A stretch of 34,732 nt of DNA. Source: Calcarisporiella thermophila CBS 279.70 (Eukaryota > Fungi > Calcarisporiellomycota). Shown piece after piece: positions 16,255-32,205 of this stretch. Where the stretch lies: assembly GCF_041956535.1 (NCBI RefSeq), contig NW_027192220.1, positions 95,485 to 130,216 on the forward strand, read 5' to 3'. The notes below the pieces were generated by a model. The model saw only the letters and a list, made by a program, of their open reading frames with translations. It was not told the origin of the DNA and did no database searches. How positions within the stretch are numbered: position 1 is the first letter of the stretch; every line of letters begins with the position of its first letter. Made by a program: the position numbers and the translations under genes.

Positions 16255-18670
16255 ATGCCAAACCAACTTCCCTCCACCCGTGAGGCCATTGTCTTCGATG
16301 ACCACACCCATCCAGTATCGCGCACGCTCGTTAAGGACACCCTTCGCGATGGAATGCACTCTTGGCGCTCTGCTTTGACCAATTACTTGATTGGCCTCTT
16401 TCCCATTGCTACATGGCTGCCTCATTACAACTTCACATGGCTGACTGGTGATTTGATTGCTGGTATCACAATTGGATGCGTGGTCGTCCCTCAGGTAAGC
16501 TGCATTTTTATCCGAAAATTGCATCCATCTTAATGAGATTTACACCACCGTGATTAGGGAATGGCATACGCGCGCATTGCAACCCTTCCGCCAGAATATG
16601 GCCTCTACTCATCTTTCGTGGGTGTTTTTATCTACTGCTTTTTTGCCACTTCAAAAGACATGACCATTGGTGAGTCCTTCAATGCCCAGTCCAATACTGC
16701 CACTTCTGTGCTCACCCTCTATTTCGATCTTTAGGTCCAACTGCGGTTATGTCCCTACTTCTCTCACAAATCATCGCCTCCATTACCTCCGAAACTAGCG
16801 CCTACTCCCCAGTGGTGATTGCCAGTGCCTATGCTCTCATGGTCGGCGTAATTTGCGCAGGGCTCGGGTTACTCCGCCTAGGCTTCATAGTCGACTTTAT
16901 CCCTAATCCGGCTATCGCAGGTTTTATGACCGGCTCTGCTATCACAATTGCCCTGGGACAAATACCAAAGTTGCTAGGAATTAAGAGTGTAGATACCCGT
17001 GCTGCCGGATATTTAGTTCTTGGAAACTCACTGGCTGGGTTGCCTCGCACGTCGCTTGACGCGGCGTTTGGGCTGACTGGTCTCTTCATCCTTTATGCAA
17101 TACGCTTTGTGACAACACGCCTGATCAATCGCTATCCACGTTATAAATGGCCCCTATTCTTCGTTAACATTGCCAGAAACATCCTCCTGGTCATTGTCTT
17201 TACGGCAATCGCATACGGCATCTCGAAAGATAATCCCGATAAGCCCCCCATTTCCATTCTGAAGAACGTGCCTTCGGGGTTCAGAGACGTTCACGTTCCC
17301 CACGTCGACGTAGGGCTCTTGCAGAGAATTGCCCCCAATTTACCAAGTGCTGTCATCATTGTTGTGTTAGAACATATAGCAATCGCAAAATCGTTTGGTC
17401 GAGTTAACGATTATAAAAGTAAACCACCCCTCTCTTTTCACTCCTCACATGTGTTCAATATTGAGCATTAATCTCTATTCCTCACTCTACCTTAGTCAAT
17501 CCTAACCAAGAACTCATCGCCATTGGAGTCTCCAACATCATTGCCTCCTTCTTCTCCGCCTATCCCTCCACGGGTTCTTTCTCGCGATCCGCCATTAAAG
17601 CCAAGAGTGGAGTAAGGACCCCGCTTGCCGGTATCTTCTCAGGTATCATCGTCATTCTCGCTCTCTATGCTTTGACCCCGGCGTTCTACTACATTCCTGA
17701 TGCGACACTTGCCGCGGTTATCATCCACGCCGTCGGTGATCTGGTTGTTGGCCCAAACACCTGGAAACACTACTGGAAAGTGAATCCCTTCGAGCTACTT
17801 ATCTTCATCGTGAGTGTGGTCGTGACCTTCTTTGTGACCGTGGAGTGGGGAATCTATATCTCGGTGATCCTATCGGTGCTGCTTCTTCTTTTGAGGATTG
17901 CCCGCCCACGGTATTCTATTCTGGGACGTGTGCCCGTCGAATCCAATGAAAAGGACCACGCACGTTACGTATATGTTCCCATCGAACACCGCACCCTGAA
18001 GACCACGACCGAGATTCAATGTCCACCCCCCGGAATCCTTATCTTCCGCTTCGAAGAGGCCCTCACCTATCCCAATGCCAACTTCATCGCCGACCGGCTC
18101 ATCGAATATGTAGAGGAAAATACACGCCGCGCTGGAGAACGGCCCAAACGTAAAGGAGACCGACCATGGAACGACGCGGGGGATAAGCCCCATATTAGGA
18201 ACTCTTCCTCGGCGAGCACTGAGCGGGACAAGCCAGTGCTAAAGGCATTGGTGTTTGATTTTTCTGGAGTGCCTCACGTTGACACCACTGGATTGCAGAT
18301 GCTGATGGACGTTAGGGCGCAACTGAATCGCTACGCAGATCGCAATGTTGACTGGCATTTCGCAAATATCATCGACGGGTCAGTTCGCCGTTCCTTGATA
18401 ACTGGCGGATTCGGAATTGCTAAAGCACCCAAAGGCCCCGCAGAAGTGGCACCTGTGGTATCTTCGCACAACCAGGCCGTTGCCTCTTCATCCTCGACTT
18501 CACCAACTGCTTCGGTAAGGGAGGACTCTTTGACGGAAGAGAAACCGAGCGTCTCCATGGTCGAGGAGGGTCAAATGACCGCTACTGAATTGGAGGTACT
18601 AGACCATACCCCATTCTTCCATGTAGACCTGGACGAGGCGGTCCGAGTCGCTGCTAAGGACTGGCAGTAA
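16255..18670 (+). CDS. SulP/SLC26 sulfate permease with C-terminal STAS domain, 4 exons
   Basis: [16 protein letters not shown]|[58 protein letters not shown] motif [14 protein letters not shown]. Confidence 0.95.
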
Positions 18671-19840: not shown

Positions 19841-22800
19841 TTAGGCAGCCTCATATTTCCACCCGCTAATGGTGCTTTCATCCCGCGACAAGATCCACGT
19901 GTCCCAGTAGTGGGTGTCCAGCTTCATGGCCACCACCTTGGTAACGTCATTGCGAGACACCGTCTTGATGCGAACATACCCCTCCTCATCCTCATCCTCC
20001 TCCTCTCGGAGCTCTTGCTCGTGAGCGCGAACCGCCTCCAAGAAGGAGTCCAAATCGTGCACACTCCTCCCCCCCACCTCCACCACCCACACTCCCGGTC
20101 GCATACTCACACTTGCGGGTGACCCATACAGAGTGCAAGACACATAGACCCCCGTCGGAACCCTCTTCACCTGCTCAAGCACAGCTTGATACGGCATCTG
20201 CACTAGTGCGCCTTGCCACTCTACTATCCGTGTCGTCTCTAATCCGCTGAGGGGGATGGTCGGCACCCTGATGCGCAATTCTTTCGCATCCCGGAGCACC
20301 ACCATTTCCACCTCCTCCAAATGCTCAATCCGCTTCAAATCGGACATTCTTCCAACGCACTCCCCGTTCATCTCCAGGATCACGTCCCCCACCTGCAGCA
20401 CCTTTTGTGCCGTTTGGTCGAGCACGTTGAGGACGTAGAGGAGCGAGTGCCGCCCGCGCTGACTGGATTCTATCCGTCGCACCCATTCGTCGGTCAAACC
20501 AAGCGTTCTTGCGGCTGCAATGCGCATGGTCCAGAGCTCCACTCCGAGCCCACGCAACTTCGGCTCCTCCCCGCGCATCATCGGCTCCAGCGTAGACTTC
20601 AGCAGATTCACGGCCAACCCCGACATAAACGACATATCCCTCCCTTTCTCATTCTGAGTGGAATAGCTTAGCCACAACGCTTGCACCTTTCCATCACGAT
20701 CACAGAGCACGCCACCTTGGGCGCTCTCCGCGTCGTCCACCTTGATCCCCTCCACGTTCATGGCCCGCCACCGAGGAGGCGAGCATTCTCGTGTGCCCAC
20801 GTTGCTGATGCTGGACACCACGGTCCGGCGAACCACCGGGGAATAATCGCTCGAGCATCCAACCAGCCAAGTCTCGTCGCCCTGCGCCAGCATCTTATCC
20901 GAGAATTCCACTGCCCGAATGGGGGTATCACCGAGAAGCGAGCGATCGAAAGTCAAGACAGCAATATTATAAACAGGGTGAAGATAAAGAAGCCGCGCCG
21001 GAATAATGATGCTATTGGCGACCGTGATAAAAATGTCTCCCACAAGAATCGTGACGGTATCGCGATCGCACACAATGAGTGGGGGGTCAGTCGATACGAT
21101 CACGCCAAATCCATAGAACTAACCACAGAAGATAATACAAGTGTTGGGGGGGTTATCCACAGGGTGTTTACAGGGAATGGGAAGAAGGGAGGTGAGACTG
21201 TGACAGCTCGCTTTACCTGAGTGTTTTTCATTCCATCCACCAGATAAGGCAATTGGAAATCAATGGCCACGAAGGACGGCATTAACAAGCCGGCCGGATG
21301 CAGGGATTCATCCAGCGTGGGAAACGATGCTGTTGCGGACACATACGAGTGCACCTTGGGCGGGGGCGGCATCTCGGTAAAGTGCCAAAGTCCAGTTGTG
21401 TCATCGCGAACTGCAACACGGAAGCTATGCCAATGACGGTCGACATGCATAATCATCACCTTTTCTTTGTACGTCTTTGACAACGAGAAGAAACGGATAG
21501 GCACGCGTGCGCCATCAGGCAGCGTCTTAATCGCCTCGATAAATGCGTCCAGATTTGGCGTTGGGATACTATTGACGCTGACAATCACCGATTTGCGCCA
21601 AGCTGATGCGCTGGCAAGCATGTGTCCACTCGTCGCGACATACGGCCCCCCCACCGGCAGCTGGTAAGTTCGTGCAATTTGGTATGACAGTTCGTGAACT
21701 ATTCCCCCTCCTACCTCCACAAATCGGTCGGGCGTAATGGAATGTAGATCCTGCACCCTCAGGCGTACATTGAGCAAACTTTTGCCGCGGCACACCATGA
21801 ACTCAATCTCTTCGCCCACCATATTGTCCACCACCGCGAAGAGCTGATTGAAATTGGCAATCATTTCGCCCTGAAGCTTGACTATGATGTCCCCCGGCAC
21901 AAGCACATTGTCAGCAGGGCCACGCGGGAGCAACGATCTTACCACGAGCAATCCGTTCTCGTCAGGAAAACGCGCACGCACTTCCTCCTCCACTTCTGCC
22001 CGCAGCCCTAACTTCCGCAGCTCATCGTAGGACATGTACTCAAACTCCGTCTGTAGCGTCCCGCGTGGAACTTGATGCCCGCGACGAATGTAGTTGAGCG
22101 CACGCTTAACTCGATCCAGAGGAAGATAGTAGCTAGATGCGGCTCGACTTGCTCCTCCAGCATTTAACGCGACAGCGTGCCCGTCAATGTCCAATACAGG
22201 GCTGCCGGACGAACCCCCACTAGTGCCGGATGCAGCTTGCAAATAAAATGTGTTAAAATCATTATATTCGCCAACCCCATATTCGGGGGCGCGCCGATCA
22301 AGCCTCGCTATGGTCCCCGCGAGGATGCTCAGTTTTTCACCAGCGTCATTACCAACCACTCGGATTTCCATCCCAACCTTGGCACGTTCTGGAGAGAGCG
22401 GGATCTCAGACAGCTCCATGAATCTGACCTTACGCGGATCAAACTGTAAAAAACCAAAATCGTGCACCGGGTCGCGATAAATTGGCCGCAGATCAACCTC
22501 CTCATAGTTTGTTAGTATGCCTTGGGCCACGATAGGAGCGGGGGAAACGACGTGACGATTCGAGAGAATGATCCCGCGTCTTGCGTCAACAATAAATCCC
22601 GACGCGGAATAAGCCCCTAATTGCACATGAACACATTATTCCACCCTTCTTCTTCTTACCGCGTCAAAATGGATTCCAAGACTTATTTACCCGATGTCTC
22701 TGTGTCAAAACTCCGAACATGACACGCCTTAATCGTGACAATGGCCTTGATAGAGCGCTCAAGCGTCGGCTCCCATGACTTCGCGTCCATCATTGCCAGA

Positions 22801-26091: not shown

Positions 26092-26164
26092 TGTTTCTAG
26101 CCGGGTTCGAACCGACGATCCTTCGCGTGTAAAGCGAATGTCCTAACCACTAGACCATAGAAAC
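26092..26164 (-). tRNA. tRNA-Val (anticodon TAC)
   Basis: GTTTCTA/TAGAAAC acceptor stem, A-box TGGTCTAGTGG, anticodon arm TTCGC-TTTACAC-GCGAA, T-loop TTCGAAC. 73 nt, with a T4 run just downstream. Confidence 0.95.
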
Positions 26165-26247
26165 TGTTTACGATGAATGAGGCAAAAAAATTGATTTTCA
26201 TATGGAAAAATATAGCAGTCACGATAAGCTCTAACACGGGCCCGGTC

Positions 26248-26967
26248 TGGGGGAGGATTAGTGTNNNNNNNNNNNNNNNNNNNNNNNNNNNNNNNNNNNN
26301 NNNNNNNNNNNNNNNNNNNNNNNNNNNNNNNNNNNNNNNNNNNNNNNNNNNNNNNNNNNNNNNNNNNNNNNNNNNNNNNNNNNNNNNNNNNNNNNNNNNN
26401 NNNNNNNNNNNNNNNNNNNNNNNNNNNNNNNNNNNNNNNNNNNNNNNNNNNNNNNNNNNNNNNNNNNNNNNNNNNNNNNNNNNNNNNNNNNNNNNNNNNN
26501 NNNNNNNNNNNNNNNNNNNNNNNNNNNNNNNNNNNNNNNNNNNNNNNNNNNNNNNNNNNNNNNNNNNNNNNNNNNNNNNNNNNNNNNNNNNNNNNNNNNN
26601 NNNNNNNNNNNNNNNNNNNNNNNNNNNNNNNNNNNNNNNNNNNNNNNNNNNNNNNNNNNNNNNNNNNNNNNNNNNNNNNNNNNNNNNNNNNNNNNNNNNN
26701 NNNNNNNNNNNNNNNNNNNNNNNNNNNNNNNNNNNNNNNNNNNNNNNNNNNNNNNNNNNNNNNNNNNNNNNNNNNNNNNNNNNNNNNNNNNNNNNNNNNN
26801 NNNNNNNNNNNNNNNNNNNNNNNNNNNNNNNNNNNNNNNNNNNNNNNNNNNNNNNNNNNNNNNNNNNNNNNNNNNNNNNNNNNNNNNNNNNNNNNNNNNN
26901 NNNNNNNNNNNNNNNNNNNNNNNNNNNNNNNNNNNNNNNNNNNNNNNNNNNNNNNNNNNNNNNNAAA
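26248..26967 (+). mobile_element. SINE copy A, mostly hidden in the assembly gap
   Basis: Head TGGGGGAGGATTAGTGT just before the gap and AAA just after it. Flanked by the 17-bp direct repeat CTAACACGGGCCCGGTC (26231-26247 and 26968-26984). Confidence 0.65.
26265..26964. other. Assembly gap (700 N)
   Basis: Run of N. Confidence 1.
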
Positions 26968-27144
26968 CTAACACGGGCCCGGTCGGGGGAAGGTTAGTGT
27001 AGTGGACTATCCCTGGTATGCCGATGAGAACGGCCTGGGTTCGAATCCCACTTCTCCCACCATCACTTACTCTTAGTTTGTGGTGCTATCCACTTGATCA
27101 GAAATTGAGTCCATTATTGAAAGGATCCCTCCTACGATAAGTAC

Positions 27145-27378
27145 TGTCACAGGGTTCGAATGGTAGACAAAGATCTTTATGAAAATAGAAGATCGGTGAG
27201 GATCCATAAGCGAATGGACTCGTATATAAATAAGAAATCACAAATAACTCAATATGGTTTTCACATGACTAAACTTAAGATATATCTCATAAACACAATA
27301 AAACGACTAACTATCAAAAATAGTAAAGGATATTAACTTTATCTCGGTAACATAATGAGCTGAGTTAATCCTGTTACA
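27145..27378. mobile_element. Solo LTR (234 bp) nested in SINE copy B
   Basis: TG...CA ends with inverted termini TGTCACAGG/CCTGTTACA. 5-bp TSD AGTAC (27140-27144, 27379-27383). The empty site is seen in SINE copy C. Confidence 0.88.
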
Positions 27379-27541
27379 AGTACAAAGATTACATCGGTTT
27401 CACGTACATGCTATTCACGACAACTACAATACACGCATATCAATTGAACGCCTATCGATCAAGGACCTATATCTCGTTATGTTAAGTCCATTGACATTAA
27501 TTTCATGTAATATATGGAAATTAAATAAAAAATTTCCATTG

Positions 27542-27793
27542 CCCTATAGGAAGTCACATAGGGAAAAAATAGGGAAAACATAGGGGAATAATGTGGAAAA
27601 CATAGGGAACACCTCACTTTCCGTATGATTTCCTGATATTTCCTATAATTTTTAGTGGTTTTTATATGGATTTTTATATGGGTAAGGATTTGGAATTTTT
27701 AGAAAAATTAGAGGAAATATTAGGAAATTATTGGGAAAATGAGGTGTTCCGCATGTGTTCCCTATGTTTTCCCTATGCCCACTTCTTATAGGG
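27542..27793. mobile_element. MITE / non-autonomous TIR element (252 bp), CACTA/CMC-like
   Basis: Termini CCCTATAGGAAGT / ACTTCTTATAGGG, reiterated subterminal ATAGGGAA motifs and long imperfect inverted arms. 3-bp TSD TTG (27539-27541, 27794-27796). The empty site is seen in SINE copy C. Confidence 0.85.
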
Positions 27794-27803
27794 TTGATTG
27801 ATC

Positions 27804-30002
27804 CCGATGGATTTGCCATAACACCGAATCGAAGGTGATTTGAGCCGCGTGTCTTACTGTCCTTGGGGCTTCTGGTAGGTCGCCAAGTACGAGATTCCTG
27901 GGGTTCAGCACCTGAGTGTTTAGGGGGCCTAAGATGGTGTTGATACACCTCTCCGCCCAATGCCACACTGACGTGAGTTCGGGACATTCGAAGAAGGTGT
28001 GACGGATGGTGTCCCTCGGAGCGTTACAGCGGGTACATTTCGGGTCATGACCAGGGAATGTCGAGTTTGTAATTACACGCTCTACGCGGATTCGCCAGCG
28101 TAGTGTGCGGTGTTTTGGGAGTGTTGGCCGTTTTTGGATGGAGGTCCAGACCTTTTCCCATTCCTTTGCCGTGGATGCAGCATCTGGCCAGGATTGGGGC
28201 GTCAGCGTTTCTGGTTCCGGAGAGCCATTTCGCTGGAAGTGCCTTCTCCGTCGGATGGAGTATTCCAGGACGGGCGCGCCAGCCAGGTGACAAAGGTGAA
28301 GTGGGAAACGAGGAGGCGGATGTTGTCGGGGTATGGCAGAACATTTCGTGATTTTCTCTACTAGGTTGGGGGGCAGGATAAGGTATCCGTGTTCCCATTG
28401 TAAGGAAAAATCCTTATAGCGACGTTCGCACGCTCTTTTTAGCCTTCCCATGGGTTGCGCGGAGTATCTACGCTCCATTTCCGATTGTATCGGCATGTTC
28501 CGCTCCAAAAAGGCTTGTCGCCGGAGTGAGCTGCATTCAATTCTTTCTCTATTGATAAGGAAGGTTAGGATATCGTTTAGTAGGTACGATGGTGTTGGCG
28601 GTTTCGGCTCCTCAAATTATCGATCTTGTTCTGTAGTTAAAGGGCATTTGTACAGGGGAAGAGACAGTACATCTGGAGTTGACCAGTTGGGTGACGCGAT
28701 CGGGCCGCCTTCGAGAGTGCGCCACTCTTGATACAAGTTATACTAAAATCCCCCTTTGCGTTTGAGTTTGGCACATGTGAAGGTGGTTGCGAAGATGGAC
28801 ATCTCGTATCCGAATGGAGCGTACATGCTCAAGATATTATGCTTCAGAATGCTTGCCCACAGAGGTGTTTTTGGGTCTTGGTTAGGCCTTATTAGTGACT
28901 CTGCGAACTTTGGTATCCATGAGGCAAGTAGGGCTGTTGTTTGGTGGCGAGGGAGAATGAGTCCAAGCCCACCTTCTTCTCGGGATTTTGCTAGCAATTT
29001 GAGACTGATTTGCGGGCCACGTCCATTCCATAAGAACTGCCGTATTATTTCGTCCAGCTCTTTGAAGAAGTATTCAGGTGGGCGTATAATTGTGGCAACG
29101 TACCATATTCGGGACAATAGTCGAGAGTTGATCAGGTGGACTTTACCGAGGAGTGAGAGTTTCCGAATCCTTCATGATTGGATCGTTTGTCTCAGCTTTG
29201 ATAATTGACATGTGTAATAAGCCTCACTTGGATGGTCTGGCATTTGTGTGGGCTTATCTGCTGTCGGAAGGTAAATTGGGATGCCGAGGTCGGTAACTAT
29301 CTCCCCTGCTGGAATGTATTCACATCTGGGCTTTATCGAGGTGCGAGCATGTTGGAGAACGACCAGGCATGATCTAAGTCTGGATAGTTGTTGTGTTACG
29401 ACGGTTATTTCATACTTATACAAATATGTATAAGCAAGTATCTTATCATCATTTTTAGTCATCATCTCCTATTCTATCATATATATAGGATATGCTTTCT
29501 ATCTTTTGAATTCTGTAGTGGTGTGTGTTATTTGTGTTATCCCTTCTATCTGTCTTCTTTCCTTTTATTAATATACTCTTAATCAGTTCCAACAGAGCAC
29601 TTAGCGTGGGAGCGACCGCTTCCATTTTGTTGATGTTGACTTTTGCGTCCGCAGCTCTCGAGTATATGTCGAGGATTTGAAACAGGTGGTCAGCATCTTG
29701 TTGGTCTACAACTCCTAGGGTCAAATCGTCTGCGTAGGCGAGCGCTTTGAGGGGTCGTTGTGGTGCTGAAATGGTAATGCCGCGTATCTTGGCTCTGATT
29801 GCGGCGAGTAGAGGTTCAACTGCGATGTTGTATAGGTATGGAGACAGTGGATCACCTTGTCGAACTCCTCTTGTGATAGGAAATGGAGCCGTTAGAGAGC
29901 CATCTATGCACACTGACGCTTGAATGCCTTCGTGTAATCTATGGATAAAGGATCGAAATCGCGGGCCAAATTTGAACTTCTCTAGGCACCTCTGTATCCA
30001 TC
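27804..30002 (-). mobile_element. Degenerate L1/Tx1-clade non-LTR retrotransposon ORF2 (RT plus CCHC zinc finger), truncated at both ends
   Basis: RGVRQGDPLSPYLY, LAYADD, KVNINK, (Y/D)LGIP, LSLLGKVHLINS, FLW...GGLG, CTRC...HTFFEC...W, LWQIHR. One frame once the solo LTR is removed, with in-frame stops at 29172, 28743 and 28617. Confidence 0.93.
29350..29594. mobile_element. Solo LTR (245 bp), Ty1/copia-type termini, nested in the LINE RT
   Basis: TGTTGGA...TCCAACA termini and 5-bp TSD GAGCA (29345-29349, 29595-29599). Excision restores the frame APTLSA|RTSIKP. Confidence 0.9.
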
Positions 30003-30062
30003 TTGTTTCCTGAAAGTCTATGTGACTTCCTCGCGCAAAAACCAATTTTCCGGTAACCAATT

Positions 30063-30263
30063 TGTTACGGGAGAAAGGAGTTTTGTGTGGAGGGGTGTCC
30101 GGATCTTGATAAAATAAGAAAATTTATCTTTATAGTTCAGAGAATTGGTGTAGAACATTATAACAAACCGAAGGGTTTAAATAAGTCAAGAAAAGTTATA
30201 CGTAAAAGTAAGAGAAATAACGAAATCGAGAGGAAATTAAGGGTGTCGAAATCCTTGTTATAC
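30063..30263. mobile_element. Possible degenerate LTR fragment
   Basis: Starts TGTTACGGGA exactly where similarity to the tRNA-Ala 5' flank ends; a possible end is TCCTTGTTATACA. No TSD found. Confidence 0.3.
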
Positions 30264-30346
30264 ATGTCGTGCTATCACGTTATTTTCGTCATGATACTCG
30301 CGACTATTGCACCTTTACCTTACGCTAACTCGTGCTACACTCTCGA

Positions 30347-30807
30347 TTTTTTTGGGGGGGGATTTATGGATCTTTATTGAAAAGTATCCTTTTAAGTTAG
30401 TATAGTGCCTTGTTAGGAGAAATACATGTAAGTAGTGGTTGATCGTATGAATACCATCCTATTTTTCAAGGACGGTATTATACAAGAGAGGAAAAGAATA
30501 TGGACTAATATAGAAAGAAAGAAAAAAAAAAGGAAAACTAGAATGCGGGTGGTAGGGTATTCGGCAAGGTCGTATTGGAGCTGAGTTTTGGTTGAAGGAT
30601 ATTTCGTCTCCTTGGATTTGTATCAAACTTCCCTTACACCAAAGCTCTTGGAAATCTTCTTTCTTATCCTTTATGGACGCTGACCATCATTTGGATCTCA
30701 CGATTTTTTGCATTTCGTGGCCTAGTTGTTCAGCTAGCGCTATTTCACTTGGTTGTGCGTTATCCATTATCATCGATAATCTTGATCGATAGATGATCCA
30801 AATTGCT
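30347..30807 (-). mobile_element. 5'-truncated LINE 3' end (ORF2 C-terminus, 3' UTR and A7 tail)
   Basis: Minus strand encodes AIWIIYRSR...IVRSK*W...FQELWCKG, like an L1/Tx1 ORF2 C-terminus. It ends AATAAAAGATCCATAAATC8A7. 15-bp TSD GTGCTACACTCTCGA (30332-30346, 30808-30822). Confidence 0.8.
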
Positions 30808-30825
30808 GTGCTACACTCTCGAGTC

Positions 30826-31162
30826 TTTTTTTTTGATCAATCAATGGAAACTTTTATTTAATTTCCATATATTACATGAAGTTAATGTCAATGGACTTAA
30901 CATAACGAGATATAGATCCTTGATCGATAGACTTTCAATCGATATGCGTGTATCGTAGTTGTCGTGTATAGCATGTACGTGAAACCGATGTAATCTTTTG
31001 TACTTATCGTAAGGGCGATCTTATCAATAATCATGACTCAGCTTCTGATCAAGTGGATAGCAGTCACAAACTAAGAGTAAGTGTTGGTGGGGGAAGTGGG
31101 ATTCGAACCCACGCCGTTCTCATCGGCATCCCAGGGATAGTCCACTACACTAACCCTCCCCC
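30826..31162 (-). mobile_element. SINE copy C: intact 337-nt tRNA-derived SINE with A9 tail
   Basis: tRNA-like head with A and B boxes, a unique body and poly(A). Perfect 16-bp TSD GCTACACTCTCGAGTC (30810-30825, 31163-31178). Confidence 0.95.
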
Positions 31163-31242
31163 GCTACACTCTCGAGTCACTTGTGACTGTCAAGGTGACT
31201 TGCCCGTACCAAAAACCAATTTTCTCGTAACAGATTCGGGCT

Positions 31243-31315
31243 GGGGGACTAGCTCAAATGGTAGAGCGCTCGCTTAGCATGCGAGAGGCACCGGGATCGA
31301 TACCCGGGTTCTCCA
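31243..31315 (+). tRNA. tRNA-Ala (anticodon AGC)
   Basis: GGGGGAC/GTTCTCC acceptor stem with G3:U70, anticodon arm CTCGC-TTAGCAT-GCGAG, ATCGA T-loop typical of eukaryotic tRNA-Ala, and an oligo-T terminator near 31327-31332. Confidence 0.96.
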
Positions 31316-32205
31316 AAGCAGTGTAATTTTTTGGTCTTTGAGTACTAAATTTTATGTACTTTTGTAAATAATTTACCAATTCTCAATTGTTTCATTTTGC
31401 TTCACACATAGACAATTTAACTCTAAAGATTTCAGTATGTTTTCGAGGTTTTATCTGATTAAAAATACAGTTGGTGAGTCTCGGATTGTTTTACTGGATA
31501 TTTTTTGAACATACACGACAAAAGCATAAATTCTGAAGATGGGTTAAATTGGCTAGATTAATTTAGCTAATTTGTTCGGCTATGACTATAGCCTTACTCT
31601 AACCACATCGTAGTAGACTACAATGAATTTTCACATAAATGCTATTTCAATAGGCTAAAAAAATGATAAATGAAACCATCACTTAGAAATCTCAGTGTAA
31701 TTGAAATATTTTGATTAACCTATTGTAATTCTGTGAAATCTATCTAGCAAAAAACAAATGGTTTCCCTTTGCGGATTTTAAAATATGCTCAGGCTTGTGC
31801 AAGTGCAAGTTTCAGCTGGATAGTAGACATTAGAAACTTTCTTATGCATAAAGTTTTCTTAGTTCAAATCATATCTCTAAATCCCGACAAGAATAATGAT
31901 AGATTCTATTCAAGGTGACGAACATGGTCGGTAGTTTGCAGTTATTCTGCTCTTGGCAGTAGTAGACAAAGATATTGGCTTCCACCTGAGGATTAATTTT
32001 TGCCGAAGTTGTTACTAGCATTGGGTGTTCTATGAACAAAAAAAAAACTCTCTTGAATCGCTTGTCCTTCAACGTAACTAAAAGTGTTTTTTTCTAACTC
32101 TTTTTATATTTCATTCACCCGCGGTGATACATAACAAGCGTGAAAACCTAATATATAATAATCCACCCTCTGACATTTGGAGCTCGCCTTATCGAAAAAA
32201 AAAAA

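Follow-up and report, generated by a model that had tools for sequence, protein, structure and literature searches.

LINE and SINE insertions at a nearly fixed distance upstream of tRNA genes in the fungus Calcarisporiella thermophila

Targeting of tRNA genes by the mobile elements of dictyostelids is a model for the survival of mobile DNA in compact genomes, and we know of no other lineage in which such targeting by non-LTR elements has been studied. The TRE5 elements of Dictyostelium and NLTR-B of P. pallidum possess an APE, a reverse transcriptase (RT) and a zinc finger, end in an oligo(A) tail, are bordered by target-site duplications (TSDs) and lie at a fixed short distance upstream of tRNA genes in the opposite orientation (PMC5911963, PMC5006619). 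ORF1p of TRE5-A contacts TFIIIB (PMC5911963).

The stretch analyzed here (the window; 34,732 nucleotides) carries nested retroelements in the 5 kb separating two tRNA genes, all with their 5′ ends toward the tRNAs. The left-hand target is tRNA-Val(TAC) (26,092–26,164, minus strand; ARAGORN; Rfam RF00005, 66 bits) and the right-hand one is tRNA-Ala(AGC) (31,243–31,315, plus strand; Rfam, 54.5 bits; 31,242–31,316 according to ARAGORN). We read this interval as layers left by successive rounds of position-specific target-primed reverse transcription involving L1-like LINEs and a SINE, with the site set by distance, and assign this reading a probability of about 0.85. A foldback or inverted-repeat element (27,542–27,795; 75-nt arms and 11-bp tandem units; repeats I3, I5 and I7; TRF) divides the Val-side stack from the Ala-side one; no copy of it was found in other loci by local BLAST.

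The closest counterpart is TRE5-A of Dictyostelium discoideum, together with TRE5-B/C and P. pallidum NLTR-B. These are likewise non-LTR elements with APE and RT, an A-rich tail and TSDs, found within a narrow distance upstream of tRNA genes of any isotype and in the opposite orientation, all of which is seen here as well; both genomes are compact and harbor a Ty3-like LTR element nearer the tRNA (PMC5911963, PMC5006619). The TRE5 distance is 44–54 bp, whereas here the TSD edge falls at 60–72 bp and the element start at about 80 bp, although the way of counting distance may differ. In addition, the host is a fungus rather than an amoeba, and a tRNA-derived SINE occupies the same niche.

On the Val side, the putative SINE A (26,248–26,967, plus strand) is enclosed by two copies of a 17-bp TSD (26,231–26,247 and 26,968–26,984, plus strand; direct repeat D3). 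Its legible sequence amounts to approximately 17 nt at the start of the head and 3 terminal A's, the rest being an N gap (26,265–26,964). SINE B (26,985–27,541, plus strand), identified by local BLAST and by inverted repeats I1, I2, I4 and I6 shared with SINE C, had been placed at the Val site too, and indeed it starts directly after the second TSD copy. It has a tRNA-like head, contains an extra 239 bp (27,145–27,383) absent from the 335-bp copies, and is cut off at the 3′ end ahead of TTGATTGATC(A)n. SINE A might instead be an assembly artefact, both gap edges representing one SINE read twice: the length of the window gap is an estimate only, and the assembly does contain overlap artefacts, since a 20-N gap in another SINE locus (L008) is bordered by a perfect duplicate of about 140 bp. 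We consider this explanation unlikely. The 3 bases preceding the repeat all differ between the gap edges (GCT at one and AAA at the other, AAA being what a poly(A) tail would leave there), and the SINE heads disagree at about 3 positions, which argues against a simple contig-overlap duplicate; moreover, tandem SINE stacks with common TSDs and free of gaps are known at three other loci (L013, L016 and L009). The layered reading as such is independent of SINE A, which rests on the 700-N gap.

The Ala-side stack includes SINE C (30,826–31,162, minus strand), a full-length 335-bp tRNA-derived SINE with its body at 30,835–31,162, a poly(A) tract at 30,826–30,834 and a 16-bp TSD (30,810–30,825 and 31,163–31,178). 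Next to it lies the 5′-truncated 3′ end of a LINE, designated LINE2 (30,347–30,807, minus strand), which has a 15-bp TSD (30,332–30,346 and 30,808–30,822) and 49 matches in the genome. We also considered this fragment as a separate SINE-like family and rejected the idea, as longer copies reach further 5′ and identify it as the 3′ end of a LINE. The original prediction had put the tRNA-proximal TSD edges at −67 from tRNA-Val (SINE A), at −65 from tRNA-Ala (SINE C) and at −68 from tRNA-Ala (LINE fragment); re-measured from the tRNA +1, they lie at 67 bp, 65 bp and, with SINE C removed, approximately 68–69 bp.

Further from tRNA-Ala, a LINE1a fragment (27,796–30,008, minus strand) carries the Pfam domains RVT_1 and zf-RVT and is homologous to sequences in L032, L027 and L039. 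Its 5′ truncation falls inside the RT, and about 460 bp are missing at the 3′ end; a dispersed repeat that ends near 29,597 interrupts the fragment, which has decayed into several frames. A single LINE had been envisaged for this locus. LINE fragments do share the same site, and the one beside SINE C is at tRNA-Ala as described, but it differs in family from the RT-bearing LINE1a fragment, and the insertions represent at least two families, LINE1 (with subfamilies a and b) and LINE2.

That the Ala-side insertions are tRNA-proximal also holds, with the correction that both the LINE2 fragment and SINE C lie inside a solo LTR of a Ty3/gypsy family, itself tRNA-targeted (30,063–31,232, minus strand; TGTTACG...GTAACA; about 350 bp once the inserts are subtracted); 11 bp separate the LTR edge from tRNA-Ala +1. 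In seven loci, this LTR start is present 9–23 bp upstream of tRNA +1, with identical LTR orientation in all seven. LTR-bearing regions upstream of tRNA genes resemble one another. A remnant of an older LTR start (30,009–30,059, minus strand) forms direct repeat D4 with 31,210–31,236, and was compared with the target sites of L010, L021 and L022; the 5′ junction of LINE1a is about 50 bp from the LTR edge, which is the place of SINEs within the LTR at other tRNA genes. Locus L062 contains gag, protease, RT, RNase H and integrase, and ends with a PPT and TGTTACG. The window LTR probably belongs with this Ty3/gypsy element, the link being the first 7–15 nt only. A TG...CA LTR no more than about 25 bp upstream of tRNA genes, combined with a Ty3/gypsy gag-pol, is characteristic of Ty3-like elements, and the distance of 9–23 bp is similar to that of Ty3 of Saccharomyces and DGLT-A of Dictyostelium (13–33 bp), with Tyl3/Tyl6 of Yarrowia being further elements of this type. 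They use an integrase mechanism, unlike the LINEs and the SINE, and the LTR is a bystander to the LINE/SINE finding.

The SINE head has A and B boxes and a cloverleaf fold (−34 kcal/mol), contains the motifs TAGTGTAGTGG and GGTTCGAATCC, and is identical to tRNA-Gly(GCC) at 56 of 79 positions. It scores below the Rfam tRNA gathering score, and at the E-value threshold Rfam returns a weak tmRNA/tRNA-clan match alone. The 5′ ends of the SINEs are precise, and their sense strand has no TTTT run. Judging by its sequence, the SINE is probably transcribed by Pol III.

The host genome is compact (28 Mb), and its tRNA genes are clustered; in the genome-wide RF00005 search, 63 of approximately 1459 rough tRNA candidates were scored. 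The genome contains at least 40 near-full-length SINE copies of 95–100% identity, out of 171 candidates, and we examined 32 copies of the 335-bp SINE in 30 loci, sampled as the best-scoring SINE copies and not as all tRNA genes. A tRNA gene stands head-to-head with the SINE in 19 of the 32, the first SINE base being 76–97 bp (median 81) from tRNA +1; two more pairs, 86 and 88 bp apart, are known from coordinates alone. Eleven tRNA isotypes are found beside SINEs (Ala, Gln, Lys, Ser, Thr, Cys, Arg, Asn, Leu and His, plus Val in the window). The claim that the 5′ ends face the tRNA extends to every tRNA-adjacent SINE (19/19) and to all tRNA-adjacent LINE fragments. Exact TSDs are present in 13 SINE copies, 16 bp long in 10 of them, and the sharp genome-wide peak expected by the original prediction is there: the tRNA-proximal TSD edge lies 60–72 bp from +1 in these copies (one at 80; median 68), divergent throughout. 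Because 19 of 32 copies have a head-to-head tRNA inside a 22-bp distance window, head-to-head insertion upstream of tRNA genes is confirmed as a genome-wide pattern that exceeds chance.

The remaining 13 copies have no tRNA inside 1.5 kb at the Rfam gathering score, and most of them adjoin contig ends or stretches of N. The copy in L006 is cleanly off-target, no tRNA having been found upstream of it even at E ≤ 1, and the SINE in L019 lies inside a LINE and is devoid of a TSD. An identical TSD is re-used in the stacks at L008 (three copies of one TSD), L013, L016, L009 and the Val site of the window. A "75-bp truncated SINE" in L008 was rejected, being the duplicate around the 20-N gap.

Random insertion would give the same picture if selective survival, or segmental duplication of tRNA-SINE modules, had shaped what is left, and a compact 28 Mb genome with clustered tRNA genes and similar LTR-bearing upstream regions might lend itself to this. 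We regard this explanation as refuted and give it next to no credence: a peak only 12 bp wide, a TSD that stays at 16 bp and uniformly divergent orientation (19/19) are beyond what selection can give, and each SINE copy has its own TSD and flanks, which, along with the 11 tRNA isotypes, indicates that the modules were not copied.

A second alternative is that the machinery recognizes a DNA sequence upstream of tRNA genes, such as the Ty3/gypsy LTR or a conserved motif, and not distance. The seven tRNA genes with the same LTR start, several SINEs at similar places within the LTR, and a weak bias towards T|A where the first nick falls are compatible with it. Against this, the LTR is absent from at least nine of the tRNA genes that carry a SINE, and their spacers and TSDs are unrelated while the distance is the same; the SINE distance is unchanged whether the spacer is native DNA or LTR. 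The two window targets are unrelated, and apart from the weak T|A, the 23 target sites have no common consensus. Sequence recognition is therefore largely refuted and, in our opinion, very improbable, and the unrelatedness of the 23 sequences upholds the earlier proposal that targeting is positional.

The LINEs follow the same rule. Four fragments, representing LINE1a, LINE1b and LINE2, are found next to tRNA-Leu, -Phe, -Val and -Pro; they begin 76–88 bp away and are oriented like the SINEs. Of the three LINEs, LINE2 is the more distantly related. The element had been described as an L1-type LINE, in agreement with its RVT_1 and zf-RVT domains and its alignment with human ORF2p: an 840-aa open frame in L032 matches residues 125–872 of human L1 ORF2p with an E-value of 1.4e-78, compared with 1e-24 for R2. 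For the endonuclease part, the match is to P0002 (PF03372), a protein mapped to G000:C32 at 97–98%, and an intact LINE frame of 1372 aa is reported at G000:C3, approximately 773.7–777.8 kb. A Pfam search of the LINE gave no match to RNase H. With an N-terminal APE, an RT, a C-terminal Cys-His motif, no RNase H and L1 ORF2p as the closest solved relative, the window LINE, known here from fragments, is best classified as L1-like. It resembles human and plant-type L1 in several respects: its ORF2 has RVT_1 and zf-RVT domains and runs collinear with human L1 ORF2p for about 750 residues, it ends in a poly(A) tail, its copies are often truncated at the 5′ end, and the TSDs measure about 15 bp. It differs from them in lacking a TT/AAAA-type target preference and in insertion confined to tRNA-upstream sites.

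The SINE and LINE1a are linked through their 3′ ends. In L039, L042 and L057, the LINE1a 3′ end is contiguous with an ORF2 of the window type, and its last ~60 nt are 83–85% identical to the SINE tail; both share a 7-bp hairpin with compensatory changes, followed by TTGATTGATC(A)n. This common terminus supports mobilization of the SINE in trans, as had been proposed, and the SINE is most likely mobilized by LINE1a. Such a 3′ end in common with a resident LINE, together with a tRNA-like head that contains A and B boxes, is the hallmark of tRNA-derived, LINE-dependent SINEs. In the eel pair UnaL2/UnaSINE1, the SINE has a tRNA-like head, its 3′ tail comes from the partner LINE, and a stem-loop lies beside the repeat tail. 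The fungal pair has the same combination of a tRNA-like head and a LINE-derived 3′ tail and is additionally site-specific for Pol III genes. Mammalian L1 shows relaxed 3′ recognition, whereas the 3′ hairpin that the fungal LINE has in common with the SINE is of the stringent type.

We propose that the first nick would be made in the tRNA-sense strand about 60–72 bp upstream of the mature tRNA 5′ end and the second 16 bp beyond it, away from the tRNA; with this geometry, the 5′ end of the element would come to face the tRNA and start about 80 bp from +1. The insertion site would be fixed by distance to the tRNA gene and not by sequence. Stacks could arise as each new insertion at the same site remakes the same TSD and displaces older copies outwards. 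The ruler is most likely a LINE protein docked on the Pol III pre-initiation complex (TFIIIB/TFIIIC). By analogy with TRE5-A, for which such docking has been shown, we infer a tether between this protein and Pol III factors; among TRE5-type elements, targeting also depends on the B box and TFIIIC.

Positional targeting could also operate without a protein tether, if the endonuclease preferred a structural feature on the upstream side of the Pol III complex, for instance bent DNA or the boundary of a nucleosome-free region. In yeast, TFIIIB covers a region that ends just short of the analogous upstream position, so that the target site would lie just beyond it; in addition, exact positions within a locus (the TSD being re-used) and a spread of 60–72 bp between loci would fit any locus-specific anchor. 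We judge this explanation to be quite unlikely, as the strict orientation and the fixed 16-bp stagger are more easily explained by an oriented protein contact and TRE5-A, the one studied analogue, uses contacts between ORF1p and TFIIIB (PMC5911963).

Returning to the tethered LINE protein, we lean slightly towards a broader hypothesis, namely that a fungal lineage independently evolved a TRE5-like ruler. An L1-like LINE would dock on the Pol III pre-initiation complex and nick with single-nucleotide precision at about −65 and −81 (the 16-bp stagger), and a tRNA-derived SINE would hijack the same machinery, thereby placing new Pol III units head-to-head beside active tRNA genes. No fungal equivalent of a tRNA-targeted LINE/SINE pair was found in the literature searched, and presumably none has been published.

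Should this hold, tRNA-gene targeting by a non-LTR element, and by a SINE, would for the first time be seen beyond the dictyostelids, and the host is a culturable thermophile. The fungal system combines at least two LINE families, a SINE partner, a sharp 16-bp staggered cut and a Ty3-like LTR element. As a second and probably independent system, it would permit a direct test of convergent Pol III tethering, and may provide natural material for programmable "safe-harbour" insertion via target-primed reverse transcription. It would also show that the target specificity of a LINE can be inherited by a SINE.

SINE C, the tRNA-Ala-side copy of a tRNA-derived SINE family with a usual length of 335 bp, was used to search the assembly of Calcarisporiella thermophila (28.2 Mb, 116 contigs; the window is G000:C30:95485-130216), and among 171 first-look candidates at least 40 were near-full-length copies with 95–100% identity. 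tRNAs were located within the 30 best SINE loci with their 1.5-kb flanks, a sample of 32 SINE copies. A tRNA gene lies 76–97 bp from the first SINE base in 19 of these 32, invariably in divergent orientation (19/19); the neighbors are tRNA-Ala(AGC, CGC), Gln(CTG, TTG), Lys, Ser, Thr, Cys, Arg(ACG, CCT), Asn, Leu and His. Two extra SINE–tRNA pairs, recognized from coordinates alone, are spaced by 86 and 88 bp. Thirteen copies have a tRNA as well as an exact TSD, which measures 16 bp in ten of them (range 12–17) and has its distal edge at a median distance of 82 bp. The TSD edges nearer the tRNA bear out the original prediction of a fixed insertion distance, forming a peak at 60–72 bp (median 68, one outlier at 80) with all elements divergent. 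Granting 1459 tRNA-like sites in 28 Mb, a random copy is expected to fit this distance window and orientation well under once per thousand. Insertion upstream of tRNA genes is a real, genome-wide pattern, far beyond chance.

The remaining 13 of the 32 copies had no tRNA at the Rfam gathering score within the same loci and flanks. Most of them have N runs or contig ends 30–700 bp upstream; the SINE of locus L006, tRNA-less without such an explanation, is a clean exception. Locus L019 (G000:C32:153831-155999) contains a SINE within a LINE, without TSD and possibly as a chimera or a nested insertion. It lies directly 3′ of an L1-like ORF2 annotated by NCBI as a gene (protein P0002), and the DNA immediately 5′ to it looks like a further tRNA-like head in reverse.

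In the window, ARAGORN and Rfam place tRNA-Val(TAC) at 26092–26164 (minus strand) and tRNA-Ala(AGC) at 31243–31315 (plus strand); these genes diverge, and the intervening 5 kb is therefore upstream of both. The window also carries two ordinary fungal genes, encoding a sulfate permease (16749–18670, plus; Sulfate_transp and STAS) and an Nma111-type PDZ/trypsin-like protease (19841–22626, minus), each in two frames, presumably owing to introns. By sequence reading, a 66-bp spacer separates tRNA-Val from the first of two copies of a 17-bp repeat (26231–26247 and 26968–26984). The first copy is followed by the initial 17 nt of a SINE head (SINE A), an N gap (26265–26964), the bases AAA and the second copy, immediately past which SINE B begins (26985–27541). 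Within SINE B, 239 bp (27145–27383) have no counterpart in SINE C or in any of the 30 further SINE copies examined; they may have been inserted, or SINE B may preserve an older, longer version of the SINE.

SINE A might be suspected of duplicating SINE B across the gap, as locus L008 (1761–2062) possesses a 20-N scaffold gap with a perfect ~140-bp duplicate on either side (SINE tail, TSD and LINE start); this is an artefact of contig overlap and calls for caution at other gaps of this assembly. The edges of the window gap are not duplicates: the three bases preceding the repeat are GCT on the left versus AAA on the right, the latter being what a preceding poly(A) tail would leave, and the two SINE heads mismatch at about 3 positions. 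Tandem elements with one common TSD also occur gap-free in L013, L016 and L009. SINE A is probably real, and the other conclusions are independent of it.

A foldback element (27542–27795), with the SINE B 3′ end on one side and the truncated 3′ end of a LINE on the other, divides the Val-side stack from the Ala-side one. Its 75-nt arms, 81% complementary, consist of 11-bp ATAGGGAAAAC-like tandem units, and no copy was present in the other 60 loci. Beyond it lies a decayed RT-bearing LINE (27796–30008, minus; RVT_1 and zf-RVT), whose 5′ junction cuts into what is left of an earlier LTR start (30009–30059). An AT-rich dispersed repeat (~29380–29597) breaks the RT of this LINE; its start, TGTTACGACGG at 29408, and its end, ...CAGTTCCAACA, suggest that it may be a short solo LTR from a different family. 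Further copies are present in L047, L050 and L055, and the corresponding ORF residues have about 40 short genome matches.

Ten base pairs from tRNA-Ala stands a Ty3/gypsy-type solo LTR (TGTTACG...GTAACA; 31232 down to 30063) holding two insertions, SINE C (30826–31162; 16-bp TSD) and then a 461-bp poly(A) element (30347–30807; 15-bp TSD), with target sites shifted by 3 bp. The initially noted distances of −67, −65 and about −68 from the tRNAs were accurate to within 1 bp.

Across 23 independent target sites, no common sequence was found beyond a weak T|A at the first nick, a signal to which the placing of the poly(A)/TSD boundary contributes. Insertion distance is the same over native DNA and over a Ty3/gypsy LTR spacer. 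SINEs in LTRs are necessarily younger than the LTR; therefore, the tRNA gene is the point from which the elements' distance is set, regardless of the intervening DNA, and specificity is positional rather than sequence-based, as had been proposed. In L008, the SINE and then a LINE1a fragment are flanked and separated by one 15–16-bp TSD, present three times. Since re-use is exact within loci but spread over 60–72 bp between them, we infer a locus-specific anchor, e.g., the position of the initiation complex, and not the mature 5′ end itself. At G000:C23:430246-436719 (L052/L059 joined), tRNA-Val and tRNA-Glu diverge and originally had just about 120 bp between them; the LINE stack that now separates the two faces tRNA-Val at a distance of about 70 bp, which shows which of the two served as anchor.

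The Ty3/gypsy LTR family is a second tRNA-targeting element of this genome, Ty3/DGLT-A-like. Its LTR edge lies 9–23 bp upstream of tRNA +1 in uniform orientation in seven loci (window 30063–31232, L014, L022, L023, L029, L044 and L060), and L062 is an internal gag-pol copy ending with PPT and TGTTACG.

The RT query matched 69 places in the genome. tRNA-adjoining LINE fragments start at 76–88 bp, head-to-head like the SINEs: LINE1b at tRNA-Leu(TAG), LINE2 at tRNA-Phe, and LINE1 at tRNA-Val(CAC) and tRNA-Pro(CGG). The 461-bp poly(A) element adjoining SINE C, noted earlier as a LINE fragment, truly is one, but of LINE2, a family other than that of the window's RT-bearing LINE (LINE1a). It is a 5′-truncated LINE2 3′ end; other copies reach further 5′, and one is truncated elsewhere with its own TSD. 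Locus L032 (contig C93) carries an uninterrupted 840-aa frame with RVT_1, 84% identical to the window LINE and collinear with residues 125–872 of human L1 ORF2p (E 1.4e-78; R2 proteins, about 1e-24). A zf-RVT lies downstream of the RT, the domain search detected no RNase H in the LINE, and P0002 covers the N-terminal endonuclease (PF03372). The LINE is L1-like, as predicted, by its ORF2p alignment and domains. Its best database relatives are two annotated proteins of C. thermophila (phylum Calcarisporiellomycota), one mapping to G000:C32 with 97–98% identity, which points to this species or a very close strain as the source of the genome. An intact 1372-aa frame lies on G000:C3.

In L039, L042 and L057, the window-type ORF2 continues to a 3′ end closing with a hairpin of 7 bp, TTGATTGATC and poly(A), whose final ~60 nt share 83–85% identity with the SINE tail; the hairpin contains paired changes (LINE CGGAAAC/GTCTCCG versus SINE TGGAAAT/GTTTCCA). 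LINE1b possesses an analogous hairpin, then CATTGATC(A)n. At the sequence level, this common end is the signature of a LINE RT that would recognize its own 3′ end, borrowed by the SINE. The SINE head has good A and B boxes and folds into a cloverleaf, every copy begins at the same G run, and the sense strand contains no TTTT, features consistent with putative Pol III transcription.

The inserted elements have their 5′ end tRNA-proximal and their poly(A) end distal, so that under target-primed reverse transcription the first nick would be made in the tRNA-sense strand about 65 bp upstream, at the TSD edge closer to the tRNA, and the second 16 bp farther from the tRNA. Among studied systems, Dictyostelium TRE5-A comes nearest; it inserts 44–54 bp upstream of tRNA genes in opposite orientation, and its ORF1p contacts TBP, Brf1 and Bdp1 (PMC5911963). 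By analogy, a tether to Pol III factors may operate here (probability of about 0.6); the main alternative is that the endonuclease instead recognizes a structural feature at the edge of the complex.

In a 2018 review of Pol III-targeted retrotransposons, the non-LTR examples are dictyostelid only (TRE5, TRE3, NLTR-A and NLTR-B) and the fungal elements are all of LTR type; the coverage of Spaller et al. 2016 is limited to dictyostelids. We found no fungal tRNA-targeted non-LTR case in full-text literature and a 2026 review, a coverage outside which most subscription journals and Repbase Reports lie, and it is probable, though not certain, that the system is so far undescribed. Its interpretation as tRNA-targeted LINE/SINE insertion is supported in every testable part: genome-wide position, unrelated targets, an L1-like LINE and the SINE–LINE 3′ end. 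We consider it a fungal, probably convergent variant of the TRE5-type targeting of tRNA genes, here by L1-like LINEs, to which it adds a tRNA-derived SINE with the same targets, a constant stagger of 16 bp and a coexisting Ty3-like LTR element nearer the tRNA.
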